From Macrostomum lignano (Eukaryota), in NCBI GenBank assembly GCA_002269645.1, contig NIVC01000571.1:310001-374000 (forward strand): a stretch of DNA of 64,000 nucleotides, given 5' to 3'. Each line of letters begins with the position of its first letter. Position 1 is the stretch's first letter. The notes under the pieces were generated by a model that worked only from the letters and a program-made list of their open reading frames with translations, did no database searches and was not told the DNA's origin. The position numbers and the translations under genes were made by a program. Of this stretch, positions 28,801 through 64,000 are shown piece after piece.

Positions 28801-29808
28801 CTTCTCTGCAGACCGTTCCGCACGGAACTTCTTGGGGCCGGCAGCCGCTCCTTGGGTTGGACCTTGGAGTCTGGATTGTACTGAAATGTACTGAAGGGCA
28901 CTCAGCTTGCTCCGACCAAGACAGTCCATCACAATGTAGTGAGCGCAGCCATGAGAGATGCCCACTTGGTCAGCAATATCGTCTATGGCCACGCGCTGAT
29001 CCTGCTGAATCACCTGCAGCACAGCTGCCACATTTTCCTATGTGCGCAATGTTGTGGGCCTTCCCGACCGCTGGGCGTGTTCCATGGACTCTCGGCCTTC
29101 CTTAAAAGCCTGAATCCAGCGGTAAATGGTTGGATCTGGTGGAGCAGTGTCCCCATAGACCTTCTTCAAAGCGTCAATGATTTCGGCTGGCTTCTAACCA
29201 AGTTTTACAAGAAACTTCACGTTAGTGCGAGCTTCGATTTTTGAATTTTCCATTGCTGAAAGGGTATACTGTGATTAGAGCGTCACTATTCAGACATCAA
29301 TCACTTTAGAAGAACCAAAACTCTGTAAAATAAAGAGCAAAAGATGTTTTTTTCAAATGAAACCAGTTGCAGTTAATTGCCTCTGATTTTTTAGGCGTTA
29401 CAACAAAATTATCATTACTTTTTGACTTCCCCTCGTATAAGAATGACAAGCTGATATAGGGGAGTGACAGGCTGATATAAAGGAGTGACAGGCTGATATG
29501 TAGGAGTGACAGGCTGACATCAGGGTGACAGATACCAGCGTGCCAATGTGTCCCGCACCCCGCAGCTCGGCCAGCTCAGCCAGGCCCTCCGAGACCGCCT
29601 GACGCAGACCGAGTCGGCCGGCAGCCAAGACGGCAGCAGCGCGGACTCAGAGCAGCTCTGGTCGACCCTGCCAGGCGACAACTTCGAAGAGAAGTTGGGC
29701 GAATTCCGCGCCATCGTTGGTCCGGAGCCGTCGGACAGCGTGCTGCTGGACTTGCTGGTCACGGCCGACGGAGACCTGAACCGGGCCCTGAACTACTACC
29801 TGTCTTGA
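22833..29808 (+). CDS. Multi-exon protein with two BTB/POZ domains and a C-terminal UBA/CUE-like domain (~840 aa)
   Basis: Phase-consistent exons 22833-22893, 22981-23048, 23522-23849, 24577-24984 (BTB1: CDLILRGSDGSEFSCH...FLHFCY), 25346-25773, 25961-26486, 27075-27347 (BTB2: DLLVTTCDERSFRVHSLVLAGRCPW...LLEFLYTG), 27756-27953 (LLLADRFELERL) and 29566-29808 (LDLLVTADGDLNRALNYYLS*). The 5' end is uncertain; there is an in-frame ATG at 22840. Confidence 0.75.
23930..24450. repeat. 32-bp intronic minisatellite (CCTCTATGAGTCACGGAGTGGGATTTCCCCAG)
   Basis: Unit recurs at 24079 and 24111, and throughout the interval. Confidence 0.9.
25025..25330. repeat. 29-bp intronic minisatellite (GAGCCAGTTAGTCACTGGATCCGCCCCCT)
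   Basis: About 10 tandem copies fill the intron up to the acceptor. Confidence 0.9.
26510..26880. repeat. 27-bp intronic minisatellite (CTCTGGATGTGAGATTGTTGCTAGGGT)
   Basis: Direct tandem copies, some degenerate. Confidence 0.85.
27970..28290. repeat. ~19/21-bp composite minisatellite (GAGTGACAGGCTGATGGTC / GAGTGACAAGTTGATATATAG), continuing at 29440-29530
   Basis: The same units lie on both sides of the mariner insertion. Confidence 0.85.
28293..29435 (-). mobile_element. Decayed mariner (Tc1/mariner) transposon
   Basis: ~28-bp TIRs (TGAGGGGGAGTCAAAAAGTAATGATA / TATCATTACTTTTTGACTTCCCCTCG) and TA TSDs at 28291-2 and 29436-7. Transposase remnant from ATG 29253 has KVLATIFWD, HNDAPAH and YSPGLAP. 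It carries an in-frame stop, frameshifts and a deletion across the WVPxEL/first catalytic Asp region. Confidence 0.92.
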
Positions 29809-33715: not shown

Positions 33716-39654
<5,939 letters not shown>

Positions 39655-41199: not shown

Positions 41200-41770
41200 T
41201 GTTGCAGTTGCTATGTAGTTTCTATGCAGTTGCTGTGTAGTTTCTATGCAGTTGCTATGCAGTTTCTATGCAGTTGCTGTGTAGTTTCTATGCAGTTGCT
41301 ATGCAGTTTCTATGCAGTTGCTGTGTAGTTTCTATGCAGTTGCTGTGTAGTTTCTATGCAGTTGCTATGCAGTTTCTATGCAGTTGCTGTGTAGTTTCTA
41401 TGCAGTTGCTATGCAGTTTCTATGCAGTTGCTGTGTAGTTTCTATGCAGTTGCTGTGTAGTTTCCATGCAGTTGCTATGTAGTTTCTATGCAGTTTCTAT
41501 GTAGTTTCAATGCAGTTTCTGTGTAGTTTCTATGCATTTGTTGTGTGGTTTCTTTGCAGTTGCTATGAAGTTTCTATGCAATTGCTGTGTAGTTTCTATG
41601 CAGTTGCTTTGTTCTCGTATTTTATATGCAGTTCGTTGCCAAGCCGCTTCTGAGATTACTATGCAAATGCTAAGCCGTTTTTATGAGGTTACTATGCAGT
41701 TGCTAAGCTGTTTCTATGAAGTTACTATGCAGTTGCTAAGCAGTTTCTACGAGGTTACTATGCAGTTGCT
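41200..41770. repeat. 11/22-bp minisatellite (TGCAGTTGCTATGTAGTTTCTA)
   Basis: Tandem copies, decaying toward the RABGGTB acceptor. Confidence 0.9.
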
Positions 41771-41813
41771 TACACAAGCGTTGCCATCCGAACGCGCCCG
41801 CAAATTCCCGCAG

Positions 41814-44445
41814 CATCGCCCAGCCACCGACATTTCCCTGCCGGCGGACGCGCCGAAGCAGCTGCTGCCGGAGAAGCACGCCGACTTCCTGTTGCAGTAC
41901 TGCAGCAGCCAGGACAACTACGAGTACGTCATGACCGAGTACCTGCGCATGTCCGGCCTCTACTGGACCGCCAGCGCCCTGGACCTCCTTGGCCGCCTGC
42001 CCGACCTGCGACAGCGGATGGACGCCGCCGCCTTCTTGCGGGACTGCGCCAGGCCCGATGGCGGCTACGGGCCGGCGCCCGGACACGACAGCCACCTGCT
42101 GTACACCCTGAGCGCCGTGCAGGTGAGCAGGTGAGGGTGCGGCGGAATGGGTGCGGCTGGGGTGTCAGGTTAGGACTGGGGTGTCAGGTTAGGACTGGGG
42201 TGTCAGGTTGGGACTGGGGTGTCAGGTTGGGACTGGGGTGTCAGGTTGTGACTGGAGTGTCAGGTTAGGACTGGGGTGTCAGGTTGGGACTGGGGTGTCA
42301 GGTTGTGACTGGAGTGTCAGGTTAGGACTGGGGTGTCAGGCTAGGACTGGGGTGTCAGCCTGGGACTGGGTGTCAGGTTGGGACTGGAGTGTCAGGTTAG
42401 GACTGGGGTGTCAGGCTAGGACTGGGGTGTCAGCCTGGGACTGGGTGTCAGGTTGGGACTGGGGTGTCAGGTTGGGACTGGGGTTTTCGTTGTGTCAGGA
42501 TGGGACTGGGGTGTCAGGTTGGGACTGGGGTTTCGGGGTGTCAGGATGGGACAGGGGTGTCAGGCTAGGACTGGGGTGTCAGCCTGGGACTGGGGTGTCA
42601 GCCTGGGACTGGGGTGTCAGCCTGGGACTGGGGTGTCAGCCTGGGACTGGGGTGTCAGGCTGGGACTGGGGTGTCAGGACGAAATTTGGGATGTCAGGAT
42701 TGGGATCTTGTCTCACACAATTGTCAGCTCCAGCCCTCCGCCTACCCCAGGTGGCTCTGCTGTTCGACCTGCGGGACTCCCTGGACGCCGGGGCCATCGC
42801 GGGCTTCGTCCGCGGCCTGCAGCGGCCTGACGGCAGCTTCCAGGGCGACCGGTGGGGCGAGGTGGACACCCGCTTCAGCTTCTGCGCGCTGGCCGCGCTG
42901 TTCCTGCTGGGGCTGGGCGACCGCCTCGACGACCTTGTCGACGCTCGCGCCGCAGGCGACTTCGTGCTGACCTGCGCCAACTGGGACGGCGGCTTCGGCA
43001 CCCGGCCGGGCAGCGAGTCGCATTCCGGACAGGTGCGGATCTTGCCTGGCTACTCACAGTAGGCAGTGCAGTGTCCCAGCTACTCACAGTAGGCAGTGCA
43101 GTGTCCCAGCTACTCACAGTAGGCAGTGCAGTGTCCCAGCTACTCACATTAGGCAGTGCAGTGTCCCAGCTACTCACAGTAGGCAGTGCAGTGTCCCAGC
43201 TACTCACATTAGGCAGTGCAGTGTCCCAGCTACTCACAGTAGGCAGTGCAGTGTCCCAGCTACTCACAGTAGGCAGTGCAGTGTCCCAGCTACTCACAGT
43301 AGGCAGTTCAGTGTCCCATCCCAGCTACTCACAGTAGGCAGTGCAGTGTCCCATCCCAGCTACTCACAGTAGGCAGTGCAGTGTCCCATCTCAGCTACTC
43401 ACAGTAGGCAGTGCAGTGTCCCAGCTACTCACAGTAGGCAGTGCAGTGTCCCAGCTACTCACAGTAGGCAGTGCAGTGTCCCATCCCAGCTACTCACAGT
43501 AGGCAGTGCAGTGTCCCATCTCAGCTACTCACAGTAGGCAGTGCAGTGTTCCAGCTACTCACAGTAGGCAGTGCAGTGTCCCATCTCAGCTACTCACAGT
43601 AGGCAGTGCAGTGTCCCATCTCAGCTACTCACAGTAGGCAGTGCAGTGTCCCATCTCAGCTACTCACAGTAGGCAGTGCAGTGTTCCAGCTACTCACAGT
43701 AGGCAGTGCAGTGTCCCATCTCAGCTACTCACAGTAGGCAGTGCAGTGTCCCATCTCAGCTACTCACAGTAGGCAGTGCAGTGTCCCATCTCAGCTACTC
43801 ACAGTAGGCAGTGCAGTGTTCCAGCTACTCACAGTAGGCAGTGCAGTGTCCCATCTCAGCTACTCACAGTAGGCAGTGCAGTGTCCCATCCCAGCTACTC
43901 ACAGTAGGCAGTGCAGTGTCCCATCTCAGCTACTCACAGTAGGCAGTGCAGTGTCCCAGCTACTCACAGTAGGCAGTGCAGTGTCCCAGCTACTCACCGC
44001 AGGCGCCCGCCCGCAGGTGTACTGCTGCATCGGCGCGCTGTCCATCCTGGGCCGCCTGCACGAGCTGGACGTGGACCGCACGGCGCTGTGGCTGGCGGAG
44101 CGGCAGCTGGCAAGCGGAGGGCTGAACGGCCGGCCGGAGAAGCTCCCGGATGTGTGCTACTCCTGGTGGGTGCTGGCCTCCCTGGCCATGCTCGGCCGGC
44201 TGTCCTGGATCTCCGGCGAGCGGCTGCTGCGCTTCGTGTGCGCGGCGCAGGACCCGGAGGCTGGCGGCATCGCCGACCGGCCCGGCGACCTCTGCGACCC
44301 CTTCCACACCCTGTTCGGCCTGGCCGGCGCCTCCCTCCTGCGGCTGGGCGGTGACTCGCTGAAGGCCATCAACCCGACTTTCTGCCTGCCAGTTGACTGT
44401 CTGGACAGGCACGGACTGCGGCTGCCGCTCTGGACTGGCGACTGA
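41814..44445 (+). CDS. RABGGTB: Rab geranylgeranyltransferase (type II) beta subunit; initiator Met not located
   Basis: Exons 41814-42122, 42751-43032 and 44017-44445 (all phase 0). EKHADF...[45 protein letters not shown] and [11 protein letters not shown] match the conserved family motifs. Confidence 0.95.
42165..42710. repeat. 19-bp intronic minisatellite (GGACTGGGGTGTCAGGTTG)
   Basis: Tandem copies. Confidence 0.9.
43048..43997. repeat. 30/35-bp intronic minisatellite (CAGCTACTCACAGTAGGCAGTGCAGTGTCC)
   Basis: About 29 tandem copies fill the intron. Confidence 0.95.
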
Positions 44446-47076: not shown

Positions 47077-50000
47077 ATGGCCGCTGCTGAGCAAATGCGA
47101 GCTGCGCTGGAGGCCGCCGACTGCGAGCAGCTGCTGAAGCTGTGTCGGCAGCTGGACTCCAACCTGACAGTTTCGGCCGGCTACTTTGAAGGTCCGCCTC
47201 ACGTGAGAGAAATTTCGGCGGCTCACCACGTCGCTAGCAAGCCGTACGGACTCGACTGTCTGGAGGTGCTGATCGACCGGTTCGGAGCTGCATGTTTGAC
47301 ATGCAGAGACGAGTTCAACTACACACCTGTGCACTGGGCCGCCATTAAGCAGAGCCAGGACAGTCTGAAGCTCATTCACATGACTCTTGGCAGCGACTGT
47401 TTTTATGAAAAAGGAAGATTTGGTCGCTCAGTGATTCACTGCGCTGCCATGAATAAGCATAGCAACAAGGCACTGAAGTGGCTGATCGGTGAGTTCGGGT
47501 CAGACAATCTAATGGCGAAGGATGACAATGGATCGACAGTCGTTCATCTATCAGCTGAGTTTCAGAGCTCAGATTCGATGGAATTCATTAAATCAATGCT
47601 CGGTTCCGACTGCTTCCGTCAGAACGGGTGGCTTGGTCGCACCGCAGTTCACTATGCTGCTTGTAACAAGGTCTCAAACTCGTCGCTCAAGTGGCTGATC
47701 GATGAGCTCGGTTCAGACTCTCTCGTGGAGAAGGATGACGATGGCTGGACAGCCGTTCATATGGCTGCCCAGTTTCAGAGTTCAGATTCAATGGAATTCA
47801 TAAATCGAAGCTCGGTTCCGACTGCTTCCGGCAGCACGGACCCAAAGGACGCACCGCAGTTCACTGTGCTGCTTGTAACAAGGTTTCAAACTCGTCGCTC
47901 AAATATCTAGTCGATGAGATCGGTTCAGACTCTCTCATGGAGAAGGATGACAATGGATCGACAGTCGTTCATCTGGCCGCTGTGTTTCAGAGCTCAGATT
48001 CGATGCAGTTTATAAAATTAAAGATCGGTTCCGACTGCTTCCGTCAGCACGGACGGCTTGGACGCACTGCAGTTCATTGTGCTGCTTATAACGAGGTCTC
48101 AGACTCGTCGCTCAAGTGGCTGATCGGTGAGCTCGGCTCAGACTCTCTCGTGGAGAAAGATTACATCGGATTGATGGCTTGTCACCTTGTCGCAGCTCAT
48201 CAGGGTGAAAACTCCATGGACTTGATGAAGAGCCTGCTCGGAGTTAAAAGGTTCCCTTTGCGTCATCGTTTTGGCCAAACTGCAGCCCATTTTGCTGCAC
48301 TAAATACAAGGAGCAATGCAACACTGGCCTGGTGTGTCAGAGAACTGGGCTCTCAGTGCCTGACTCACGTAGATAAAGACGGCAACAATCCACTACACAA
48401 TGCTGCTCAGCATCAAGATGAGAAGTCGATGCAGCTGGCGGTGAGCTCACTCGGACCGGACTGTCTCAAGCTGCCAGGTGACAAGCAGCGAACTGCAGTT
48501 CACTTCGCGGCCATCAACACCAACAGCGTCTCTGCGCTAAGGTGGATTGTCGGTCAGCTGGGACCCGACTGTCTGAAGCTGAGGGACGACGAGGGCATCA
48601 CGGCTGCGCACCTGGCAGCTCAGCACCAAAGCGAGGACTCGCTGCGGCTCATCAGGGACTCGCTGGGCGTCGCCGCCTTCGACTTGCAGGACCGGCAGGG
48701 ACAGTCGGTGGCGGACTATGCAAAGAAGAACAACCGGTCGGAGCGGATGCTGGGCTGCATCGCCGAGCTGCGGGAGGAGGAGAGGCTAAATAGGTGAGCT
48801 GCCTGCTGCTTAAAGACGCCATAGCGTTGAGGCCATTTAGTATATTTGGATATTACGTACTGTATAATACACAGCAGAGCAAACCTTAGTCAAGCTTATT
48901 TTAACTTGTATAGCGAGTCCCGTTATCGATTGCTTTTTCGTTAGCGGGATTATCGTTCCCGTTTACCTGCCGTTAGCCCGAACAACAACGACAACAACAA
49001 CAAAGAAAACAATGTCAACAAAGCAATAATAACAGTAACAACAAAAACAACAGAAAAGCACTGACAGACGCAATGCATATACCAAAGTTTTTAGGTTCTT
49101 TAGGACACTTTAGGTTCTTGATTTATTTATTAAGCTATGGTAAAAATAAGGACGGTCAAATTCCTACTTCGATTCGATTCGATTTAACCTCGGGAAGAAG
49201 GAGAAACAGGATGAAGTCTGGCTTCGTTGGTTTTGCTCAAATCAATCGAGTCTTCTCAATTTTCAGGACGTGGCAAACAAGTTGACATTCGCAGTGGTTT
49301 TCAGACTTTTGTTTAACTTTGACAATGAGCATCAATATTCATTTGTATGTCAGCTTTCTGGTTTGGTTTAGGATTTGACTTACTCAATACACCTATAATT
49401 GTGATTTTATGTGAAATTATGATTGTACATACTTTGTCAACAACAATGATTTTGGAAGTTCCAATACATGTACATTGGGGACCGCGGGTCCACACCTGAT
49501 ACAGCGGTAAGAAAGACCAGCAGTCCCAAAACTGCATTGCAATCAAAGCAGTCACGTTTTTCTGCTTCCAGAGCTCCGGCTTCCTTGGACCCGAGCTTCA
49601 GCAGCTGGACCTTCTAGCCTGACGATCGGAGAGGGCGGGTTCGGCAAGGTGTATAAGGCCTTCACCGATAGGCAGCAGACGTTGCTGTCAAAATCGTCGA
49701 GCCCGTTCGCTGCAGCGATCCGTCGAAGCTAGAGATGGCGGTGGAGCAGGAGAGGCGGGGCTTCGAGATCCTCGTGCGCATCCGGCACCGGAACATCGTG
49801 CAGTTTCTCAAGACCGAGCGCTCAGCGGAGAACGGGTTCTGCATCTTCACGGAGCTCATCGCAGGGTGCAGCCTCCTCGATCTGATGAACCGGCTGAACA
49901 AGCCGTTCGATGAGCCAGCAGTGAGGCGTTTCTCGCATCAAGTGAGCTGTCACTCCTGCCTCTGCCACAGTGTGAATACTGAGCGAACAGCTGACTCTTC

Positions 50001-50465
50001 GACCCCGAACCCCTTTGCAGATCTGCAGGGCGCTCAACTTCCTGCACTGTGAGCACATCGTCCACCGAGACATCAAGTGCTCCAATATCATGCTCACCCA
50101 CGAGAGCGTCATCAAGCTGATCGACTTCGGACTCGCAAAGGAAATCGTCTCAGCAGCGCAGGGAGCCGCGACCTACACCCTCGGAACTGTTCACTTCATG
50201 GCCGCAGAGCTGCTTCTTGATGACGAGAATGACCGGCTGGTGTACACTCCGAAGACAGATGTGTGGGCGTTCGGCTGCACCGTGTTCGAGATGCTGGAGA
50301 GGAGGCCACCAAAAGGTCAGAGTGACTTCAAAGGGCATGCCGCAGCTGCCAGACGGGACCTCCGACACTCTGAGAGATTTCTACCGGCGCTGCGTGATGA
50401 AGGAGCCTGGAGAGCGGGCGGATACTGCGGAGCTGCTGCGACACAGCTTCCTGCAGAGCGGGTAA
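47077..50465 (+). pseudogene. Ankyrin-repeat/STE-type kinase gene, copy 1 (disrupted)
   Basis: ANK exon 47077-48793 has a 1-nt deletion near 47800 (ATAAAT versus ATTAAAT). Donor AG|GTGAGC at 48794. Kinase exons 49572-49941 and 50021-50465 have a TAG, frameshifts near 49615 and 49680, and another near 50315. HRDIKCSN and DFG remain. Confidence 0.8.
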
Positions 50466-51219
50466 GCGTGCGCACTCGAGCTTTGCACTGCACAGTTTGA
50501 ATCACAGAATATTTGCGGTAAATTCTGTAAACTTTCACTATTCTACTATTTTGTTTTTTACTGCTTTATTGTTTAACTGTTTTGCTGTTTTAGTGCTATT
50601 GACCGACTGAATGTCGGATTTTGATTCATTCTCGACTCACCTTGTTGCTCTTATTATTCAACTTTAAGCTGCTGCATTGTTCTGCTGTATGCTGCTAAAG
50701 TCGTTGTCTGCTGCACTTGACCATGTTTTTCTGTTCCACGAGCGTATACTGTAATGCCTTTATATTGTTCTGCTGTATCGCTGTTTGCAAGTAAAATTCA
50801 GAATGCAGCAGTTTTCAAGTCAATACGCTCGTAAAAAGTGATTTTAATTTTTGCTTTGCACTTTTATTTGAAAATAAAAAGTTGTGTGACTTGCCCGGTA
50901 TCTCTCGGGACGCAGATTTGATTCAGATTCGCTTTTGATGCCACTCAACGATTCCACAGCGACTCCAGCACGCCTCAGATACAACTCTACGACGCCCCAG
51001 AGTCGTCGCACATAATAAAAACGCCTCAAATTGACTCTTACGAGTATGCGACTCGTTTGACAACTTTTTGGCGACTTGCATTGTGACGTCTTGTCACGGC
51101 TAGAGTTACTTCTTTTCTATTTTATGTGCTAGCTGCAACGACTCTCTGAAACTATTCTGTTGCTGCGCAAGTGACTCTGGGACGCTTCTTGGCATGGGTA
51201 CCGTTTTCATCGGGAGTCT

Positions 51220-51600
51220 GCAGCTCATTCACATGACTCTGCGCAGAGATTGTTTTTTATTAAAAAAGATTTGGTCGCTCTGCAGTGTTTTATTATACTG
51301 CCATGAATAAACAAAGCAGCTGATCGGTGAGCTCGGCTCAGACTCCAATGGAGGAGGAAAATGGCCCCCAGAAGTCTCCGCAGTGACTCTTTTTTTAAAG
51401 GAAAATTCTGTAGCTCAAGGTTTTAATGCTCTGCCATGAATAAGCATAGCAACCAGGCACTCAAGTGGCTCGTCGGTGAGCTAGGCTCAGACTCTCCCAT
51501 GAAGGATTAGCAATGAATCTCGGAACTCGCGGCAGCGATTTTTTATGAAAAGGGAAAATTTGGCTCAGAGTTTTAATGCGCTGCCATGAATAGGTAAAGC
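51220..51600 (+). pseudogene. Highly decayed ankyrin-repeat relic (third copy)
   Basis: CAGCTCATTCACATGACTCT...AGATTTGGTCGCTC and GCCATGAATAAGCATAGCAACCAGGCACTCAAGTGGCT...GGTGAGCTAGGCTCAGACTCTC match the ANK exons, in about 3 degenerate units. Confidence 0.7.
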
Positions 51601-52509
51601 AACAAATACGCCTGCACTCTCAGAAAGCAAAGATAAGTCCCACTATTCTCACTGACCTGAATCCGAAAGCACTGGTTGAGCCATCCGCTCATTTATAACT
51701 GTACATGTATAGGTCCCCTGCCCTACCTGTCGTTAAGCTCCTCAGTCACGTTGCCATGGCAACAGACTGGCTTAAAGTTAAAGTTCCCAGTCGAGAACCG
51801 GGATTAAATTTTGGTTCAGGTCAAACGCTCAATTTCACATAGCTGGTACAAGGGTTGTTTGTCTTCGGTCAGTTTCCACAGTCTAAAAAGTAATTCTAAA
51901 TGACTTTTAATTCAAGAAAAAAGGTGGAGCTGACGCTGCTCATACAAATGTTTTTAAACAAACTTGATTACTCACAAATCCGTAACCTTAATCTCTTCAT
52001 GATCCCAAGCTCAGTTCAAATCAGCCTTCGCTTCTTGTGCACACAGGGGCAGAGCAGCTCAGCGGTAGCGCATCTGCCTCGTGCACAGAACTGACTCTAA
52101 GCTTGTACGATTCTGACATAGTTTGAAAGCGGTTCGGATAGCACCTGGATGCTAGGACTAGGATCGACCCCAAATGGCAGCTGGAAATTCTGACTATCAG
52201 AGGATTGGCAACGCATCTCAGTTTGCGAGAATTCTGGACAGAAAAGCCAAAATCTTTCTAATGCTGGAATAAACAAATCTGCTCGATCAAGAGAACCGGC
52301 TCTAACTAGCCAATGAAGATGGCCCAGCCATTCTCAGCCAACCATCGGTCTCAAGGGAAACAAAACACTATCAAATAAATGAATCCCAGTCTTAACCTGA
52401 AAGCTTAACTCCCAGACCAGACTGAGTTTTCGAAAGTTCAAGAAGAACACCCGAAGCCGCTGAGGATTTCAGTGGTGAAGACAAACGGAGAAACTCGAAA
52501 CATTTGGAA

Positions 52510-54175
52510 ATGCCAGCTGGAATTCTAGCACTGCTGTTCGGCTGCATGGCTGCTGTGACAGGTGAGGCTTCTCATGCACGTTGCAGAAGCATTGCCGGTC
52601 AAATGCACTGAGTGCCTGCGAAACATCAAGAATTGAAAATTTTTAGAAGTTGTCAACCACATTTGTTAACTGCTGTGATGGCGCAGCCACAGTTTGCAAT
52701 ACACAGAATCTCCTCAAACCAACAGGCGCCCACCAATCCAGTCTCTTCACCGCTGTCACCGGACCCGTCCTGATCGGCAACGCCTCCAGCAGCGAACTCG
52801 TCAACCTGACCGGCGTCCAGACCCGGCTGGAGTGTCTGGCAGCGTGCCAGCGGAAGGGCTGCCTGCTGGCTTCGCTCATCCCCAGCTCGCGCGTCTGCCA
52901 GCTGCTGCTGCTCAACGACGCGTCTCAGGCGCCGGGACCGGCCGGGACTCACGTGCAGAGACTCGTGGGCTCCGAGCCCGGCGCCAGGCTGTGGACGGCC
53001 GAGAACTTCACGGAGCTGATGAGGAAGAGGATGCTGAATGTCACCATTGAGCTCAGAAGTGAGGAAAAGCCAATGTTTGCAAATTTTTCTGTGCTTCGAG
53101 CATTTGCTGCACCTTGACATCTGATCTGCAGCGCCCTCTTTCACTGCAGACAGCAGCACGGGCAGGGCCGGCTCCATCCAGTCCGTGACGATCCCCTCGA
53201 CCGGCTGCTACCGGATCGAAGTGTCGGGCGCCAGAGGCGGCACCAACTCCTTCTCAGGCAAGGCTGGCGGCAGCGGCGCCTTCGTGTCCGGCGCCTTCAA
53301 CCTGACGGCCGGCACCCAGCTGAGCGTCGTGGTCGGACAGGCTGGCGGTCCGCCCAGCAACTTGTACGCTGGTGGCGGCGGAGGCGGCGGCAGCTTCGTG
53401 TACCGGACGGCAGACGAGCTGCTGCTGGCTGCAGCCGGAGGCGGCGGTGCCGGGACCTACAGCTCAGCTGGTGAGTAAAAATGGCTTCAGGACAACTGGT
53501 TAAAATATATTCTCCAAAAGCTCTCTGATGTTTAAGTGCTTAGGGTATTCCTGTGTCTGGTTTTCAATTGATGTCGGTTTTTGAGAGACTTACTTTAGTA
53601 AAATCAGCTCCAAACACAAAACAACTAACCAAATAGGGCACTCATACTATTGAATATGTTGAAAGTAAGCCACGAGCACCGAATTCGCAGGCCTGCCCGG
53701 AGAGGCCGGCGTCAACGGCTCCGTCGCGAATCCGAGCGAAAACAGCCACGGCGGCAGCAACGGACAGCCGGGCTTCCACGACTCCAGCGCCATGACCGGC
53801 AACCAGAACCTCGCTGGCTGCGGCGCCGGCTGGCTGGGGAAGCCGGTGTGCACCAGGCGGGGACCGGACGACGGTGACGGAGGCGGCAGTCGGGCCGAAG
53901 GCTGGCTGGGCGGCGACGCCGGCGGCTCCAACACCGGCGACGGCGGGTTCGGCGGTGGCGGAGGCGGCGGCACGGCGAACCCCAACTATGGCGTTGCCGG
54001 GGCCGGCGGCGGCTTCAGCGGAGGCGCCACCAGCTTCTCGGGGAGCCCTCCAGGAGGTGGCGGCGGCTCCTTCTGCTCCGGCAGCGGCTGCAGCGGCACC
54101 ACTGGCGGCAACGCCGGCCAGCACGGCCTGGTGGTCATCCGGCTGGTCGATCCGCTGAGCAACTCTTGCGAGTGA
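52510..54175 (+). CDS. Secreted protein with a PAN/apple-like module and an ALK/LTK-type glycine-rich domain (~396 aa, 4 exons)
   Basis: Exons 52510-52561 (signal MPAGILALLFGCMAAVTG), 52726-53058 (CLAACQRKGC...C), 53150-53470 (YRIEVSGARGG...GQAGG...GGGGGGSFV...LLLAAAGGGG) and 53691-54175 (GGFGGGGGG...GAGGGFSGG...GGGGSFC...GNAGQHGLVVI). All junctions are phase 1. No TM helix or kinase domain. Confidence 0.82.
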
Positions 54176-57159
54176 CGATTTCATGGAAACTGGACATTGT
54201 CCAACGGAACTGAGACTGTGTTGTTTTAGGAGTGGAATGCTGTGGCAGTTTTTTGGGAAATTTTCAAGTGTTTACTTTTTTATTGGCGACCGTTTCCGCT
54301 ACAAGCCGAACACTATCAAGTCCAGGTGAAACTTTCACGGTGGAGTGACTTTGGGACCTGCTTTTATGCCTAATACGCTTGACTCTGCAGTGGGCGAGAC
54401 CAGCAAAGTAGCAATACTCTTTGCCTTAAATTAATCTCGTGTTGTATTCTTGCACTTTTGTTGCAGTGCAAGGGCATCCCATTCTTTAGTCGTTGTGGTG
54501 ACTCAGTTAGTCCGCCTTGCTTCATGCGTTATGCGCTAGACTGTGATTTTTTGTTTGGTTTAAGCCTTAGCCTCCCCCCCGCAGTTCTCCTTGTTGTCAC
54601 TATTCTCGTGCCTTGCGTGTACTTTTTGTTGTTTACTGCATTCTGATTGGCTGGGCCGGCAGCGGGCTGGTGTTTAATTTTTTGCAGGGGGTGGTGGGCT
54701 GGAGGGCTTGCGGACCCCCTTCCTCGGGCCGTGACGCGGGGTGTCGTTTTCGTTGTCTTGGGATTCGGAGCTAGACTAGAGGGGTACATTGGCACGGCAC
54801 TGGCTTCATTGTATGCCAGCCTGCACCACCGCAGACATCACGGGTCTGTGCATCAACACTTGTATGTAGCCTGTGGGCTTTGGGATCCAGGGATACACTA
54901 CTCTCTTGATATCTCAAATACTTTAGCTTGCTAGTACGAGCGAGTTCGGATGAGGGGGGGTTTAAAGTTGCATTTGTTACTTCGTCAATAATCCTATTAA
55001 ATCTATATTATCCCAAAAATCGCCATAAAGGGGTCGACTTAGTTCGAAAATGTTTGAACATAATACTTTTACCTGCTGCTTGCTTAATCCTGAGTCAATC
55101 ACTTTCAGTGCAAAAAAGTTCGCTGCCTCCATAATCCCAATGACTCATCTCTAAAACTTCTCAACTTACAAAATGCAACCCACCGCTACAATTCTCGCCT
55201 CAGCCGGACAAGGGTGAAGGTCAAATTCTTTAGTCAACTGGCCTCGGGTACACAAGACTCTACTGAGCTGATGAGAGAGAAAAGACATGTTTATGTGCTC
55301 ACACCTACTTTCTCGTGCTCAAGATCCAAGTCTCCCGATGCTGCCTGCCTGCCTGAGTACACCGCGTTTACTCCTCCCGTCCCATCCTCGACTCGTCTTG
55401 CCATGGAAAGAGTGATTAAAACTAGATAAAAGGACACCCGCTACTTCCAATATGTTCAGAGTTCCCGAGCTCGCCAGTTTGATCCACTGCACTAAAATTA
55501 ATAACTTCAATGGCTGATGCTGAGCTGTCTTATTTTCAGCAGGAGTCTGGTGAATTAGACTACATCAAAAAATGGATTTAACAGTCCAGAATTTGTTTCG
55601 TAGAAAGTGACCGGAATGCCAACCGAGCCAAAAGATGATGAGAGACGAACAAGCGGTAAAAAAATCGGCCAACAGCTTCGCGATTGGACCGATCGAGCTG
55701 ACCAGCATCGAAGAGTTGAAAGCCGTCGGTTATCGGATCTAAGGCTTCATCAAGGAATCTGAACGCTATCAAGGAGATTATTCACGACAGCCAGAGCCAA
55801 GGTTTGTCACTGTGTATAAGCGCGAGAGGAATTCTCCAGTGCATGAAGATGGTGCTAAAAATACCAATATCGAATCTTTTTAAAGCAGATTGGCTTTACA
55901 CCGGCTTGGGTTAATTTCCTAGTCCGGGTCTCCAGTTCTCCAGCGCAGCCGAATTTCCCTTTTTACATCTAGGAGCAATGAATAGGCATCTGACAAAGGC
56001 TGCTGATTGCTGCTGATGGAGAATGAGGAGCTGGCTCAGGCCGATTTCCGATCCTTGGCTTCTATTGAACATTTAGGGTGTTTTTTGATTGCTTGAACTC
56101 GGAGCAAATTTTATAGCGAACCAGATGCTGCAGTATCCGTTTTTATACGTTGAAGTAGGGGTCGCAAAGTTTTGAGGTTGGGGCAAGCTATACCAAGCTA
56201 TTCAACCCAATATTAGAAACCTCTACATGCATTGTTAAAGAACAAAAAGTATGGCTCATTTTTAACCCCGGCAACAAGAAGTTTCTGCTGGCGGAGCCGC
56301 TATTGAAACCGCGATTGGCATCACGTGACCAGGCCTGGATCCCGGCTTCCATAGCGAGAACACCAGCCAGGGAGCAGTGAGTGATCCGCCTTGCAGCTCA
56401 GACCGAGGAGCTCAGAATTCAGGGACTCCCAGGCACAGGTGCTCGGGATTTCAGATTCCCGGAAATGCCCAGAAAGTGACTGACTTTGACTCTGATCCAA
56501 CTCTGCCGAACCCGATCACCGGACCTGATCTTCGAGCAGCATAACTGATACATGAGTCCGGTCCATCAGCAGCAGTTAGATTGACTCAATCTAGATTGAC
56601 CCATCTGTGCAGCAGCCAGTGCTCAAGTTCGCCTCTCTGCAAGCATCTTCATCGCCAGCCTCCGGCTCTGAGCCCCACCCTCCCAGAGAATTGAGCAGCT
56701 CTAATAGCTCTATAGTGCCGAAATTCTGTGCTCAAACGTGCTCGCCTCATCATCAAGGCTCTCCGTCCCTCTGCAATCGTCCCTCTCAAAATGCAAAACG
56801 CGCGGCATTTTGGGCCAAGTTTTGCACCTGCTCGATACCCCTGAGTACTCTATTGTTTGCTGCCGTGGCCCTGCGGCTCCACCAATGCAGAGCTCGAAGG
56901 CCCGCAGCCGCCTCTCCGCCTTCGGCCCCATCTCAGCCTCCAGCCTCCGACTCACCCATTGTGCTGCAGCTTCGCTCTGTCCCCATGCCTGCCCCGAGCT
57001 CAGAAGCCTCTCAGCTGAGTACGCGCTTGCGGGGCAACGGCAGTGTGCAGAAGCTCTAAGAATCGATGAGGCGGTTTAAGGAGCAGCCAGCAACCGCTCG
57101 GCCTGAGACCGGCCACACTGCTCAGCAGGAGGCGCTGCCAATTTTGCTACTCGAATTCG

Positions 57160-57445
57160 GCTGTGTTGCCTGTGCTGAAGGTGAGTCTGTGTGGTTTCTG
57201 TGTGCTGCCTGTGCTGAAGGTGATTCTGTGTGGTTTCTGTGTGCTGCCTGTGCTGAAGGTGAGTCTGTGTGGTTTCTGTGTGCTGCCTGTGCTGAAGGTG
57301 ATTCTGTGTGGTTTCTGTGTGCTGCCTGTGCTGAAGGTGAGTCTGTTTGGTTTCTGTGTGCTGCCTGTGCTGAAGGTGAGTCTGTGTGGTTTCTATGTGC
57401 TGCCTGTGCTGAAGATGAGTCTCTGTGGTTTCTGTGTGCTGCCTG
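57160..57445. repeat. 39-bp minisatellite (TGTGCTGCCTGTGCTGAAGGTGAGTCTGTGTGGTTTCTG)
   Basis: About 7 tandem copies. Confidence 0.9.
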
Positions 57446-58794
57446 TGCCTGTGCATTGCGAGACAACTGCCGTTGGCAGATGACTATTTGCGGAAAATGC
57501 AAGTCTATGAATTTCGAAAAAAAAATTTTAAGACTAATTGTAGACGAAAGCTGTGAAAATTAGAGAAAATCGACTAAATCTCAGTAAATCTTGGTAAATT
57601 TCAGAACCGTAATAGTAGGTTTTTGTCAAGGCGGAACAAGTAATAGTCGAATTTGTCCTGTTGCTGTCATATAAAGGGGCCTATCTTGAGTACTAGCTAA
57701 ATATGATCTATAGCTTAAATTGCTGTCATTTCAGCTGAGCTCTGGGTACTGCCTGACTGATATTGCTGGCCACCAATGCAGGTGCGCGCACTGTTCTCCC
57801 CTCTCCTTCCAGCTGTCTGATTCCTCATGTAGGTCACGTGACCCAATTATTTATCCAATGTGCCCCCTGCTCATGTCTTCAATATATAAGATCTGCGCAA
57901 TATGAGCCAGGAACCAGTTTGAATTTCCTTGATTGATCTGCTGTTGTCTTCTGCAGGCACGGGTGCCCGATTCTCGTCCGAGAATTCGGCTCAGTTCGTT
58001 CCCGTGAGTTCATGCTGCTTGAGCACAGCATTTGGTTCCGCTGTCCCAGGGACCCTAACAGCAGAGACAGCTGTGGGCGATTTTCTTTGGGTGCCAGAAA
58101 CTGGGTGTGGCCTGGATAACTTCCCGGTCGAGTCGATCAGAAACTTCGGGACATCCCATCCAGGTCTCTTTGGTGCTCCTGAGGATAAAGGGAGAAATTT
58201 TAATTTCACGAGAACTCACGAGAGCTCCGGAATGCCTGTACCGGTTAATCTGGCTGCTGTCGCACTGGAGGCGGACAAGCCGACAAGTCACCGATTTCAT
58301 TCGGTTCGGTCAGCGTCCCGCATCTTGAGCTCCATCTCGGTTGCTTAAGCTCTCAGCTGCTTTATTGTTTCTAATTTGTTGGTTTACCTCCAGCTTCAGC
58401 TTTAAACTCCATTAAATCTACAATATTTAGCTCCATAGCAGTGCCAGCTTCTCATATCAGCAACACCTTCCCGAAGCAGTGCCTCCGCTCCCTCAGCTCC
58501 GGTCTCTGCTGCCCCGCCACATCTATGCAGTAGTCAGAACGGTTAACACGCGCCTGACTCGTGGCGAAGAACCCGGGTTCGATCCCGTGTTTAGCCGCAC
58601 TAATTCGGTAGTCTTGAGATTTGTGAGTTTGTGCCTGCGTGCGAGCCACCCTGATACATTCCGAAATTTTGCAGATTACATTGTCAATCTCATGGCAATC
58701 AAGGGACATTCGATGCAAAGCCCCTCAATTCTCAAACACAAACACGGACGAATTGCAGGTCGTGTTCAACTCGACTGACGCTCAATTCTTTCCG

Positions 58795-61700
58795 ATGGCC
58801 GCTGCGGATCAACTGCGAGCTGCGCTGGAGGCCAACGACTGCGAGCGGCTGCTGAAGCTGTGCCGGCAGCTGGACTCCAACCTGACAGTGTCGTCTGGCA
58901 AATTTAAAGACCCGCCTCACACGAGAGAAATGTCGGTGACTCACCACGTCGCTAGCAAGCCGTACGGACTCGACTGTCTGGAGGTGCTGATCGACCGGTT
59001 CGGAGCTGCATGTTTGACATGCAGAGACGAGTTCAACTACACACCTGTGCACTGGGCCGCTATGGAGCAGAGCCAGGAGACCCTGCAGCTCATCCACGTA
59101 AACCTGAGCAGCGACTGTTTTTATGAAAAAGGAAGATTTGGTCGCTCAGTGTTTCACTGTGCTGCCGTGAATGAGCATAGCAACAAAGCTCTTGAGTGGC
59201 TGATCGGTGAGCTCGGCTCAGACTCTCTCATGGAGAAGGATGACAATGGCTCGACAGTCGTTCATCTGGCCGCCCAGTGTCAGAGCTCAGATTCGATGGA
59301 CTTCATTAAATCGAAGCTCGGTTCCGACTGCTTCCGTCAGCGCGGGTGGCTTGGTCGCACCGCAGTTCACTGTGCTGCTTGTAACAAGGTCTCAAACTCG
59401 TCGCTCAAGTGGCTGATCGATGAGCTCGGCTCAGACTCTCTCATGAAGGAGGATGTCAATGGTTCGACAGTCGTTCATCTGGCCGCCGGGGCTCAGAGCT
59501 CAGATTCGATGCAGTTCATTAAATCGGAGCTCGGTTCCGACTGCTTCCGTCAGCGTGGGTGGCTTGGTCGGACACCAATTCACTGTGCTGCTTGTAACGA
59601 GGTCTCAAACTCATCGCTCAAGTGGCTGATTGGCGAGCTCGGCTCGAACTCTCTTGTGGAGAAGGACGACAATGGATCGACAGTCGTTCATCTGGCCGCC
59701 CAGTGTCAGAGCTCAGATTCGTTGGAATTCATTAAATCGAAGCTCGGTTCCGACTGCTTCCGTCAGAGCGGATGGCTTGGTCGCACCGCAGTTCACTGTG
59801 CTGCTTTCAACAAGGTCTCAAACTCGTCCCTCAAATGGCTGATAGATGAGCTCGGCTCAGACTCTCTCTTGGAGAAGGGTGACAATGGATCGACAGTCGT
59901 TCATATGGCCGCCGAGTTTCAAGGCTCAGATTCGATGCAGTTCATTAAATCGAAGCTCGGTTCCGACTGCTTCCGTCAGTGCGGGTGGCTTGGTCGCACC
60001 GCAGTTCACTATGCTGCTTGCAACAAGGTCTCAAACTCGTCGCTCAAGTGGCTTATCGATGAGCTCGGCTCAGACTCTCTCATGGAGAAGGATGACGATG
60101 GAGTTACAGTCGTTCGTCTTGCCGCACAGTGTCAGGGATCAGATTCGATGGAGTTCATTAAATCGAAGCTCGGTAACGACTGTTTCCGTCAGCGGGGATT
60201 TCTTGCAGGCACCGCAGTTCACTATGCTGCTTGTAACAAGGTCTCAAACTCATCCTTAAAGTTCCTGATCGATGAGCTGGGCTCCGATTCTCTCATAAAG
60301 AAGGTTGAAGATGGATCGACAGTCGTTCATATGGCCGCCGAGTTTCAAGGCTCAGATTCGATGCAGTTTATTAAATCGAAACTCGGTGCTGACTGCTTCC
60401 GTCAGCGCGGATTCAAGGGACGCACCGCAGTTCACTGTGCTGCTTGTAACATCAACAGCGTCTCTGCGCTAAGGTGGATTGTCGGTCAGCTGGGACCCGA
60501 CTGTCTGAAGCTGAGGGACGACGAGGGCATCACGGCTGCGCACCTGGCAGCTCAGCACCAGGACGAGGACTCGCTACGGCTCATCAGGGACTCGCTGGGC
60601 GTCGCCGCCTTCGACTTGCAGGACCAGCAGGGACAGTCGGTGGCGGACTACGCGAAGAAGAACAGCCGGTCGGAGCGGATGCTGGGCTGCATCGCCGAGC
60701 TGCGGGAGGAGGAGAGGCTGCGAGCCTCGATGGAGGACAACCGTCTGCATAGTAGTTCTGCTGAGGGACAACAGGATGGGTGAGCCGCCTGCTTAAAGGG
60801 ACAATTAGCGTTGCGGCCAGAGTAAAAGCTGGTATAAGAGCACCCTCTTAGATAATGTGCTTAGATAATGTGCTTGTATATGGTGCATACGACAGATTCA
60901 ATTGCAAGGAGTCTCAAGCATTGATTAGCGGGTTTGTCGATTAAAGAAGTCGTGAAATCTTTTGAATATCGAGCCGCGTCTGTGTTGCCAGACGATTCGG
61001 TTTTCCACAGTTGCTGCAAGTTTTGCGTCTTGCAGCCTCACAGTTGCTGTGGCCGGACTGACCGCATCTGTAGCAGGTGAGGAAATGGCTTGCTGACTGG
61101 TGGACGGTCCAAGTGACTTCTGCTTGGCTGCTGTTGCCGATTTTTTTGCTGCTGGGTGGTGCTTTGCGTGCTAATCGCGGCGACGGTCGAATCCTTCGAC
61201 AGCTCGATTGCCGTTGGTTGCGCTTCTGAAGCTTCATGGGCATCGCTGAGCAAAATGTCGGATTCTTGCAGTAGTCGGCGACGAAGTGCGTCAGAGAAGC
61301 AGGTGGCGACCAACTGATCACGAATGATGGAATTTCGAAGTTCTCCGAAGTCGCAGGTGTCAGCGGGTGCTTTCATCCGAGCGTGCCAGCTGTCTATGGT
61401 CTCTCCCAGCTGTTTTGTGCACTGCCGAAACTGATACCGTGCGAAGACCAGGTTTTAACAGAGTTGTTAGCTGTAGGTGCTTCCACGGGGCAGTGATAGC
61501 GGCGGAGCAAATAAGTGAGAGAAAGATGGAAGCTAGTTAGATATACACTTCCCCACAACAATCATCAATTAACAGATTCCCTGCCTGCTCAGTTCCCCAT
61601 TTCGGCAGCAATTCCCCATTGCTCCCAACATTTTCCAGTGTGAAGCCGTCTCTGGACCCCGCCTTCTCCAGCTGGGAGTTCCTCCTCGATGTTGACGGCA

Positions 61701-62732
61701 ACACGCAGCTGCTCGGAGCAGGCGGTTTCGGCCAGGTGTACAAGGCGTTCACCGATAAGCAACAGACTGTGGCTGTCAAGATCGTCAAGCTGGAAGGTGC
61801 CAGCAGTGCCAGCCTGATAGACGAGGCCATCGAGAAGGAGAACGCGGAGATCTCAGTCCTGAAGGCCGTCCGGCACCCGAACATCGTGCAGTTCCTCAAG
61901 TCTGAGCGCATCAAGAAGGGCGAGCTGTGTATCTTTACCGAGCTGATCTCTGGCCACAGCCTCTCTGAGCTGATGCAGCTGCAGCGACGGCCCTTCGATG
62001 AGGCAGCAGTGAGGAACTTCTCCAAGCAGGTGAGATCCCACACCACCCCATCCAGCAGTGAGGGACTTCTCCAAGCAGGTGAGATCTCACACCACCCCAT
62101 CCAGCAGTGAGGGACTTCTCCAAGCAGGTGAGATCCCACACCACCCCATGCAGCAGTGAGGGACTTCTCCAAACAACTCAGATCCCACACCACCCCATGC
62201 AGCAGTGAGGGACTTCTCCAAGCAGCTCAGATCCCACACCACCCCTGCTCACTCGCTCCCCAACTCACAGATCTGCACAGCGCTCCACTTCCTGCACAGC
62301 CGCAGTCCCGTCACCCTGCACCGTGACATCAAGTGCTCCAACATAATGCTCACCAACGAGGGCCTCATCAAGCTGATCGACTTCGGTGTCGCCAAGGAGG
62401 TCTTCGCCACAATGTGCAGCACCAAGACGGCGCACGGCACCCTCCATTTCATGGCTCCTGAGCTGTTCAGTGAGGACGAAGGAATCGTGTACTCACCCAA
62501 GACTGACGTGTGGGCTTTCGGCTGCTCCGTGTTCGAGATGCTGGAGATGAAGCCTCCGAACTGGCAGTTCAGGTGGCAGCAGATCCCGCTGAGGATTCAC
62601 AACCACGACATGCCGCAGCTACCGGCGGAGGCCTCCGCCCTGCTGAGGGACTTCTACGGACGGTGCGTCCAGAGGGAGCCGAGGAGGCGAGCGGCCGCCG
62701 CGGAGCTGCTGGAGCACAAATTTCTGCAGTGA
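58795..62732 (+). CDS. Ankyrin-repeat protein kinase (N-terminal ANK array plus STE/MAP3K-like kinase; ~945 aa), intact copy 2
   Basis: ANK exon 58795-60779 (six 213-bp/71-aa units). Donor GG|GTGAGC (phase 2) joins the acceptor TTTTCCAG|T at 61638. Kinase exons 61639-62029 and 62271-62732 carry [30 protein letters not shown] and DVWAFG. Confidence 0.8.
60960..61500 (-). mobile_element. Ty3/gypsy gag fragment, antisense within the ANK-kinase intron
   Basis: GETIDSWHARM...CDFGELRNSIIRDQLV...LRRRLLQE, followed by a frameshifted zinc knuckle CYRCGQSGH...CSNCGKPN. No pol or LTRs seen. Confidence 0.75.
62006..62245 (+). repeat. 49-bp tandem repeat (5 copies) duplicating an exon end plus splice donor
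   Basis: GCAGTGAGG starts at 62006, 62055, 62104, 62153 and 62202. Copies 1-3 contain AAGCAG|GTGAGA. Confidence 0.9.
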
Positions 62733-62985
62733 CAGACTGGCATGAGTCAGTGACAGACTGGCATGAGTCAGTGACAGATTGGCATGAGTCAGTGACAGAC
62801 TGGCATGAGTCAGTGACAGATTGGCATGAGTCAGTGACAGATTGGCATGAGTCAGTGACAGATTGGCATGAGTCAGTGACAGACTGGCATGAGTCAGTGA
62901 CAGATTCGCATGGGTCAGTGACAGATTGGCATGAGTCAGTGACAGATTGGCTTGAGTCAGTGACAGATTGGCATGAGTCAGTGCC
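62727..62985. repeat. 21-bp minisatellite including the kinase stop codon (CAGTGACAGACTGGCATGAGT)
   Basis: About 12 copies; the first unit is CAG TGA, the last codon plus stop. Confidence 0.93.
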
Positions 62986-63384
62986 AATTTGGGCTCCTGT
63001 GCTGCTAATAAACATATATTTAATCAATTTTGATATGTAGCTCGCTATAAAGTTCTGTCGAAATTGGTTCAAAGTGAGAAATTGTTCATTCGATGCTGAT
63101 TAAAATATTCTACCGATGTTGGAAATTCCAAATCACAATATACTTCAACCGCCGTTATCTATTGTTCTGCTGCACAGCTGTTTTGCCCATTTGCCAATCT
63201 TTGAATGCTTTTTTACTTGCTCCGAGTAATCATACGAACTTCCAAAGTTCTCGGAGTACAGCTAGCTCAGTACCTTGTGTTTATTGCCGTTCAAATACAA
63301 GCCCAAAACTGCAGCCGCTTTCAGAGCACTAAAGTGATTTTCTTCTTGGTGACTAGCGTTCATTTTAACTGCTGTCATTGTCCA

Positions 63385-64000
63385 TGATCCCAAATTCATG
63401 ATCCCAACTGTCACTGATCCCAATTGTCACTGATCCAAATTGTCACTGATCCCAAATTCATGATCCCAATTGTCACTGATTTCAATTGTCACTGATCCCA
63501 ATTGTCACTGATCCCAATTGTCACTGATCCCAATTGTCACTGATCCCAATTGTCACTGATCCCAATTGTCACTGATTTCAATTGTCAATGATCCCAACTG
63601 TCACTGATCTCAATTGTCACTAAACCCAATTGTCAATGATCCCAACTGTCACTGATTTCAATTGTCACTGATCCCAATTGTCACTGATCCCAATTGTCAC
63701 TGATTTCAATTGTCAATGATCTCAATTGTCACTAAACCCAATTGTCAATGATCCCAACTGTCACTGATTTCAATTGTCACTGATCCCAATTGTCACTGAT
63801 CCCAACTGTCTTTGATTTCAATTGTCAATGATTTCTCAATTGTCACTGATCCCAACTGTCTTTGATTTCAATTGTCAATGATTTCTCAATTGTCACTGAT
63901 CCCAATTGTCACTGATCCCAATTGTCACTGATCCCAATTGTCACTGATCCCAATTGTCACTGATTTCAATTGTCAATGATCCCAACTGTCACTTATCTCA
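63385..64000. repeat. 16-bp minisatellite (GATCCCAATTGTCACT) running off the right edge
   Basis: Tandem copies to the end of the window. Confidence 0.95.

Follow-up and report, generated by a model that had tools for sequence, protein, structure and literature searches.

Ankyrin-repeat and kinase reading frames as probable exons of one gene in the flatworm Macrostomum lignano

In the stretch of Macrostomum lignano DNA analyzed here (64,000 nt, 50% G+C; hereafter the window), an open reading frame (ORF) of ankyrin repeats (ANK) is followed by a protein kinase ORF at 58795-62732, and the same plan occurs upstream at 47079-50465. Do the two ORFs belong to one gene or to two, and what kind of kinase would such a gene encode? 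We call the downstream locus paralog 2 and the upstream one paralog 1. Based on the comparisons described below, we hold with good confidence that the ORFs at 58795-62732 are exons of one four-exon gene (57.1-63.0 kb) in a flatworm ANK-STE kinase family, the predicted product of which has about 17 ankyrin repeats and a complete Ser/Thr kinase domain of the STE group. An initial annotation had read the separate ORFs as one spliced gene, and this reading is borne out: the intron between them is shared by seven of seven loci, five RNA-derived models cross the junction, and the kinase has no start codon of its own.

Structure of the spliced gene

The features of paralog 2 are as follows (a slash within a sequence marks an exon boundary; tandem repeats were located with TRF, supplemented by a motif scan for the 39-nt repeat).

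57094-57180, + strand: probable non-coding exon 1 (5' untranslated region, 5'UTR), with donor CTGAAG/GTGAGT at 57181, by homology to BOX15_Mlig007832g1 in locus L001
57162-57448, + strand: 39-nt tandem repeat, 7.4 copies, duplicating the end of the 5'UTR exon with its donor
58759-60779, + strand: exon 2, with acceptor ttgcAG at 58757-58758, 36 nt of 5'UTR, ATG at 58795 and the entire ankyrin region
59195-60451, + strand: ankyrin array, 5.9 copies of a 213-nt unit, each of 71 amino acids (aa) or two ankyrin repeats
60780-61638, + strand: intron 1, phase 2, GTGAGC...CCAG, with a read-through TGA at 60781-60783
61639-62029, + strand: exon 3, with the family motif LDPxFxxW and then the kinase N-lobe (GAGGFG, VAVK lysine K709, alphaC Glu) to ...FSKQ
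62004-62245, + strand: 49-nt tandem repeat, 4.9 copies, making up most of intron 2 and duplicating the end of kinase exon 3 with its donor
62030-62270, + strand: intron 2, phase 0, from CAG/GTGAGA at 62030 to CACAG/ at 62270, splitting the kinase
62271-62732, + strand: exon 4, encoding the kinase C-lobe with its subdomain XI Arg; TGA stop at 62730-62732
62727-63012, + strand: 3'UTR, with a 21-nt tandem repeat in 12 copies (62727-62983) and the first AATAAA at 63007

The join of 58795-60779, 61639-62029 and 62271-62732 gives a coding sequence of 2838 nt (945 aa) with no internal stop, in which Pfam recognizes Ank_2 (E=4e-48) and Pkinase (E=6e-56). The coding part of exon 2 is an open frame of 661 codons and two bases, without stops, and ends at the GTGAGC donor that begins at 60780, two bases into a codon. 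The acceptor of intron 1 closes a pyrimidine-rich tract (...ttttccAG, with the AG at 61637-61638), the exon begins at 61639, and the junction codon GG/T (Gly) is followed by VKPSLDPAFSSW. The donor at 60780 and the acceptor at 61638, which the initial annotation had proposed as a phase-2 pair restoring the kinase frame, are thus both in place. Read-through of the donor gives GGG TGA; the immediate stop on intron retention, also pointed out earlier, is real but automatic for any phase-2 GTGA donor. To this single junction a second intron (62030-62270) has to be added, and both introns are GT-AG. Intron 1 has 10-16 stops in every frame, and a search for AATAAA within it found none. The ANK N-terminus reads CERLL...TVSSGKFKD, and the kinase carries SSWEFLLDVDGNTQ. 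The highest 19-residue hydropathy of the 945-aa product is 1.17, with no membrane-spanning segment predicted and no signal-peptide-like N-terminus seen, and the product is probably soluble and cytoplasmic.

The non-coding exon 1 at 57094-57180 is a probable one: in the RNA-derived model BOX15_Mlig007832g1 of L001, an intact M. lignano counterpart, the exon 1 end CTGAAG/GTGAGT is joined to ttgcag/GTCGTGTTC. The 39-nt repeat offers six candidate CTGAAG/GTGA donors (GTGAGT or GTGATT). The 49-nt repeat, of which another M. lignano locus, L002, has 21 copies (8750-9775), likewise supplies extra intron 2 donors (exon ends 62078 and 62127), the use of which would lengthen exon 3 by 49 or 98 nt, with a resulting frameshift. 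The 21-nt repeat (62727-62983) starts at the stop codon and recurs in the 3'UTR of L002.

For exon mapping, five BOX15 proteins were placed back on their genomic loci (L001, L002, L005, L006 and L007). In these five loci and in both window copies (seven of seven), a phase-2 intron lies exactly five codons before the invariant LDP, and a phase-0 second intron after FSxQ was mapped in the same five and in paralog 2. One of the seven loci, L002, appears to use a GC donor. Judged from these mapped sequences, the common position and phase of the intron is beyond chance. The BOX15_Mlig models in GenBank rest on RNA-seq and a de novo transcriptome (StringTie, TACO, TransDecoder) and not on ab initio prediction (PMC5730564), and five such paralog models read through the ANK-kinase junction; P0002 has the sequence ...EGQQDE/APASLDPSFSSW there, and P0001 has ...ETPSAS/ARPALDPAFSSW. 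Of the M. lignano proteins that match the spliced model, about 17 in all, most hold ANK and Pkinase within a single model. The transcript-like contigs L003 and L004 (SRR28338163/4; 3.1-3.2 kb), which are not from M. lignano, encode ANK and kinase in one uninterrupted ORF of 877 aa, the protein of which is 54% identical to M. lignano P0090 over 850 aa.

A stand-alone kinase ORF was rejected, since it has no start codon and the ATG of the spliced leader would be out of frame. The region from the upstream stop (61538) to kinase residue 112 has no in-frame ATG; residue 112 is the first in-frame Met and lies beyond the G-loop, the catalytic Lys and the alphaC Glu. The spliced leader of M. lignano terminates in ATG (PMC8629364), and when placed on the 61638 acceptor it reads MCEAVSGPRLLQLGVPPRC and then a stop. 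P0047, a public UniProt entry of M. lignano (a 283-aa fragment), is 100% identical to exons 3 and 4 and uses both the paralog 2 acceptor and the second intron. Because its first residue is Val (61640), with no Met, it represents a 5'-partial internal exon rather than a free-standing gene. Expression of paralog 2 itself is inferred from these related sequences.

Kinase group and ankyrin variation

The catalytic residues are all present in the spliced product (945-aa numbering: G688 and G690, K709, E729, D811, N816, D829 and E856; including GAGGFG, VAVK and APE), and the G-loop, beta3 Lys, alphaC Glu, HRD Asp, Asn, DFG Asp and APE are invariant among 14 family kinases (alignment A1). Paralog 2 thus presumably encodes an active kinase. 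Pfam found no CRIB/PBD or CNH/citron domain in the product, only ANK and kinase families.

ILK, RIPK4/ANKK1 and TNNI3K, familiar animal kinases with ankyrin repeats, belong to the TKL group, and DAPK1 belongs to the CAMK group. Membership of paralog 2 in these groups was rejected: none of ILK, RIPK4, TNNI3K and DAPK1 is found among the best 60 solved-structure matches, which are STE20 and STE11 kinases and, with the family profile, Nek7. A Nek-ankyrin protein of the Giardia type was also rejected, since its domain order is reversed, Nek7 (168 bits) scores below the STE kinases, and no TALM motif was seen by eye in the repeat units.

The choice between STE11 and STE20 was judged by bit scores, with YODA, a genuine STE11 kinase, as the control. 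Among solved structures, the single sequence scores highest with MST4 (134.5 bits) and STK24 (133.8), followed by ASK1 (122) and MEKK2 (119.5), and the family profile ranks SLK (193), STK24 (190) and MST4 (187) before MEKK2 (177), ASK1 (172) and Nek7; the human STE20 kinases are slightly above MEKK2 and ASK1, by 13-16 bits. The control is different: YODA gives 228 bits with MEKK2, 206 with ASK1 and 175 with STK24, and so favors MEKK2 by 53. When 1.84 billion representative proteins were searched, on the other hand, the best single-domain matches outside the family were plant STE11 MAP3Ks (MAPKKK 165, YODA 161 and MAPKKK1-like 161 bits), together with an unnamed algal protein (163 bits), and no STE20 kinase scored that high. 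On these scores the kinase is of the STE group and is clearly assigned to neither STE11 nor STE20, because the control discriminates clearly and the ANK-STE family does not. Of the earlier description as STE11/MEKK-like and not TKL or CAMK, the second half stands, and the first goes beyond what these scores show.

The rival reading that survives best follows from the same numbers. It holds that the kinase is no MAP3K at all, but either a divergent kinase of the STE20 type or an orphan of the STE group, and acts outside the three-tier MAPK cascade; the ankyrin repeats would then serve mainly for localization or autoinhibition rather than sensing. The lead of SLK, STK24 and MST4 argues for it, as does the control, from which a true STE11 kinase would be expected to show a clear preference; the plant MAP3Ks at the top of the all-protein search, and the lack of the CRIB/PBD or CNH domains typical of STE20 kinases, argue against it. 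We give it somewhat less than an even chance.

The initial annotation had also spoken of a variable ANK sensor. The repeats were scanned with phmmer. Paralog 1, paralog 2 and L001 together supplied 13 clean units, in which variability was scored. Twelve positions, which we take to correspond to those randomized for binding in designed ankyrin repeat proteins (consensus DxxGxTPLHLAAxxGH...), were compared with the rest of the unit. They have a mean entropy of 0.90, against 0.34 elsewhere (permutation p about 0.0009), and the ratio of nonsynonymous to synonymous substitutions (dN/dS) is 1.21 and 0.34, respectively, values that are indicative only, as the units are related by descent and gene conversion and are not independent. 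This suggests that ANK variation is concentrated at canonical binding-surface positions, and lends some support to the variable part of the earlier claim. Variation also extends to the number of units: the array of paralog 1 has 3.2 copies of the 213-nt unit (TRF).

The family, the tandem pseudogene and the origin of the modules

In the same all-protein search, the paralog 2 kinase matches the core members of its family at 247-564 bits and any non-family protein at 165 bits or less; a second tier of ANK-linked M. lignano kinases lies at about 160-185 bits. All matches above about 230 bits are from M. lignano except P0096. The family comprises roughly two dozen clusters at 50% identity, a number inflated by two annotation sets and by duplicated genome copies. 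Like most of the paralog models, paralog 2 has an ANK array and a C-terminal Pkinase in one polypeptide, and the members all have the same intron position, a kinase module that opens with LDPxFxxW, and an intact set of catalytic residues. Variants exist: in P0090 (BOX15_Mlig002250g2) the ANK array is followed by two kinase domains, and P0100 and P0101 have a kinase and no Pfam ANK match. As far as the sequences sampled indicate, the family is almost confined to M. lignano, though not strictly, given the 877-aa relative in SRR28338163/4. The architecture had been put forward as a lineage-specific one. Its near-confinement to M. lignano agrees with this, but it is not new, as GenBank and UniProt already list RNA-derived fused models of paralogs under the label of hypothetical proteins; these public models also go part of the way toward a match with a known conserved family, which had been named as a possible refutation, except that the family is not conserved beyond the lineage. 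In the library searched, no paper was found on these gene identifiers or on an ANK-STE family in Macrostomum, and none that refers to the runs SRR28338163/4.

The upstream tandem copy has the same exon plan.

47079-50465, + strand: paralog 1, pseudogene, with ANK exon 47079-48793, intron 48794-49571 and kinase exons 49572-49941 and 50021-50465

Its splice signals are at the equivalent positions (phase-2 GTGAGC donor at 48794, acceptor AG at 49570-49571), and the second intron was placed by inspection of the sequence and by alignment with L001. The kinase is about 97% identical to that of L001 outside deletions, and its lesions were called against this intact counterpart. At 49615-49617, 14 codons past the acceptor, TTG has become an in-frame TAG. 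Three deletions follow: 20 nt are missing at 49624/49625, 1 nt at 49680/49681 within the VAVK codons, and 26 nt at about 50317/50318. The ANK array has a 1-nt deletion near 47802, and a 54-nt in-frame deletion lies directly before the donor. Sequencing errors do not typically take the form of 20-nt or 26-nt deletions. Measured against the intact L001 gene, paralog 1 (47.1-50.5 kb) has one nonsense codon and four deletions that shift the frame, the lesions expected of a unitary pseudogene, and is on this comparison a recently inactivated pseudogene. The claim that donor and acceptor lead into an intact kinase in both copies thus holds for both as to the splice sites, and for paralog 2 alone as to the kinase. 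A short isolated ANK-exon-like fragment (60% identity over 45 aa) is found downstream of paralog 1 at 51373-51504 on the + strand.

The two modules of paralog 2 have different closest relatives. The 6.4 kb upstream (51127-57448) is 97.4% identical to locus L001 (NIVC01002192.1, GCA_002269645.1), and over its first 396 coding nt paralog 2 shares 99% identity with the L001 gene, at a synonymous divergence (dS) of 0.011. The kinase modules, however, differ: the window at 61578-62989 matches L002 at 92-95%, and the L001 kinase matches paralog 1. The break between the L001-type and L002-type sequence falls within intron 1, in which similarity is limited to the two ends, on either side of a retroelement remnant inserted antisense between the L001-like and L002-like intron stretches.

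60941-61376, - strand: Gag-like retroelement remnant, frameshifted, with a CCHC zinc knuckle (ORFs; Pfam zf-CCHC 22.4 bits, E=1.3e-4)

A phage collection held no match to the inner part of intron 1, a result that was expected and is uninformative. The combination of an L001-type ANK region with an L002-type kinase would reflect either a recent ectopic exchange within intron 1 or a chimera of the assembly. Exon shuffling at the linker intron fits the split matches to L001 and L002, the Gag-like remnant at the break and the existence of ANK-caspase models, one of which, P0016, has a caspase with an intact QACRG and an ANK array that, as far as the C-terminal cap, shares 65-69% identity with the array of P0001. 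Kinase and possibly caspase modules appear to have been exchanged at the domain-boundary intron.

Several observations weigh against the existence of a single functional gene as described here, in addition to the relatedness of the repeat units mentioned above. The only public model identical to the paralog 2 locus sequence is the kinase-only fragment P0047. Models of the family with ANK only exist (P0008, P0012 and P0017), and some ANK exons thus stand alone. The L001-L002 combination could be an assembly chimera. The dN/dS of the paralog 2 kinase against its closest relative is 0.61, so that it evolves fairly fast under modest constraint. The AlphaFold model of the last ankyrin repeats and the kinase, which places the junction in a disordered linker (linker pLDDT <50), is mediocre, with a mean pLDDT of 70 and values <50 in the catalytic-loop region.

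Some of these points would be explained if paralog 2 were an assembly chimera, or an unexpressed decaying copy, in which modules of different loci have been joined through repeats and no real 945-aa protein exists. The match of the flank and first 396 coding nt to L001 (97-99%) and of the kinase module to L002 and not L001 is what such a chimera would give; the break also adjoins the retroelement remnant and repeat arrays, the family decays readily (paralog 1, L010), and the dN/dS of the kinase is not low. Against it, 2.8 kb of coding sequence has neither stops nor frameshifts, all catalytic residues and the splice signals are intact, and P0006, a garbled 889-aa public model, joins the same ANK type to the paralog 2 kinase, though possibly from the same assembly. 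We regard this explanation as quite unlikely. Least likely of all is that there are two genes, one for an ANK-only protein ending at the TGA of 60781-60783 and one for a kinase with its own start or a spliced-leader acceptor at 61639: P0047, the ANK-only models (in L009, the locus of P0017, the ORF stops at the TGA of a relic phase-2 CA/GTGAAC donor, with no kinase within 4 kb) and the many polycistronic, trans-spliced units of M. lignano (PMC5730564) speak for it, but it is opposed by the Val start of P0047, the first Met at residue 112, the out-of-frame leader ATG, the five RNA-derived models and one cDNA-like contig that cross the junction, and the intron kept in all seven loci. At L010, the locus of P0008, an unannotated kinase-like stretch is seen 2.2 kb downstream of the ANK-only model.

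If paralog 2 is a single spliced gene, as we prefer to think, its ankyrin solenoid would be the protein-binding part that gives specificity. The number of repeats would be altered by unequal exchange of the 213-nt unit, with the canonical binding-surface positions varying fastest. The array would bring or regulate an active kinase, the downstream targets of which could be MAP2Ks or other proteins, and new ANK-effector pairings would arise, probably through recombination within the domain-boundary intron. A sensor-kinase is a reasonable hypothesis, while a receptor wired to a MAPK cascade, as the initial annotation pictured it, is a step that we can only infer. A still wider proposal would make the ANK exon an exchangeable recognition cassette, joined through the shared domain-boundary intron to one STE kinase, to two tandem kinases or to a caspase; together with diversifying binding-surface residues and a fast birth and death of copies, it would form a flatworm-specific repertoire of intracellular surveillance or cell-death receptors. 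We consider this proposal unlikely; if true, the cassette repertoire would be akin in its logic to other expanded families of innate-immune receptors, with different parts.

In short, the outcome is a correct gene-structure call and a hypothesis, not a demonstrated pathway. The combination of ankyrin repeats with an STE-group kinase is unusual in animals, and here it forms a large, fast-evolving family in a flatworm amenable to RNA interference and transgenesis. Should the choice of partners really depend on the variable ANK surface, the family would offer a tractable case of binding-repeat cassettes and effectors recombining through an intron, and its members would be candidate lineage-specific proteins of stress, immune or cell-death signaling. 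As for annotation, the public entry matching the kinase exons of paralog 2 is a headless fragment, the fused entry is garbled, and paralog 1 needs a pseudogene flag.

Other features of the window and comparison with known systems

Between the two paralogs, at 52650-54184 (+ strand), lie ORFs that match a PAN domain weakly and the ALK/LTK glycine-rich domain at E=3.8e-9; they probably belong to a separate secreted or receptor-like gene. A tRNA at 58530-58600 (T-arm-like GGTTCGATCCCG) was rejected, as neither ARAGORN nor Rfam gave a match there; the segment may be a fragment of a tRNA-derived repeat. A 16-nt repeat in 39 copies occupies 63377-63997; the L001 gene has the same repeat about 3.9 kb downstream. 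Within 1-46500, where short tandem repeats fill many introns, genes were judged by eye from ORF translations, and the mariner remnant by Pfam.

5559-7118, - strand: apparent secreted Tyr/Ser-rich repeat protein
11163-11951, - strand: apparent HAD-like hydrolase
12542-13693, - strand: apparent sugar-transporter-like membrane protein
28507-29031, - strand: mariner transposase remnant (Pfam Transposase_1, E=2e-14)
33716-39048, + strand: apparent P-type ATPase exons
41532-44445, + strand: apparent prenyltransferase beta-subunit-like gene

The nearest known relatives of paralog 2 are the M. lignano ANK-Pkinase proteins BOX15_Mlig023755g1 (P0001), BOX15_Mlig007832g1 (P0002) and BOX15_Mlig014128g1 (P0007) and UniProt entries of the A0A1I8... 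series, which belong to the same family. Like P0001, P0002 and P0007, paralog 2 has an N-terminal ANK array, the phase-2 intron, LDPxFxxW and a kinase that is 50-90% identical. Unlike the public paralogs, it combines a P0002-type ANK array with a P0001-type kinase, a combination for which no full-length public model was found. The family is uncharacterized, with no member of described function.

With ILK, RIPK4/ANKK1, TNNI3K and DAPK1, paralog 2 shares the presence of ankyrin repeats and a kinase domain in one cytoplasmic polypeptide, and in ILK and TNNI3K the repeats are N-terminal as well. It differs from all of them in its STE-group catalytic domain; moreover, they are single-copy and conserved, whereas the family of paralog 2 is an expansion with fast turnover. 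The resemblance to STE11 kinases (YODA/MEKK-like, MEKK2, ASK1) and STE20 kinases (SLK, MST3/4) is limited to the kinase domain, with about 35-40% identity and the motifs HRDIKxxN, GTxxFMAPE and DVWAFG, and the SAM, PB1, CRIB and CNH accessory domains of these kinases are absent from the paralog 2 product. To our knowledge, ankyrin repeats are not a feature of the STE11 or STE20 families.

ANK-caspases have been reported in Platyhelminthes (PMC11463336). Like these, M. lignano P0016, P0271 and P0278 have an ANK region ahead of a caspase domain; unlike in paralog 2, their effector is a protease, and the models are predictions. The Nek-ankyrin proteins of Giardia lamblia (PMC3218828) represent a similar situation, in that a kinase with variable ankyrin repeats has undergone a lineage-specific expansion, in which close paralogs differ by gains and losses of repeats and many members have decayed. 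However, the Giardia proteins have an N-terminal Nek domain, C-terminal repeats with the TALM motif and are mostly catalytically dead, whereas those of M. lignano have a C-terminal STE kinase in which the catalytic residues are conserved.

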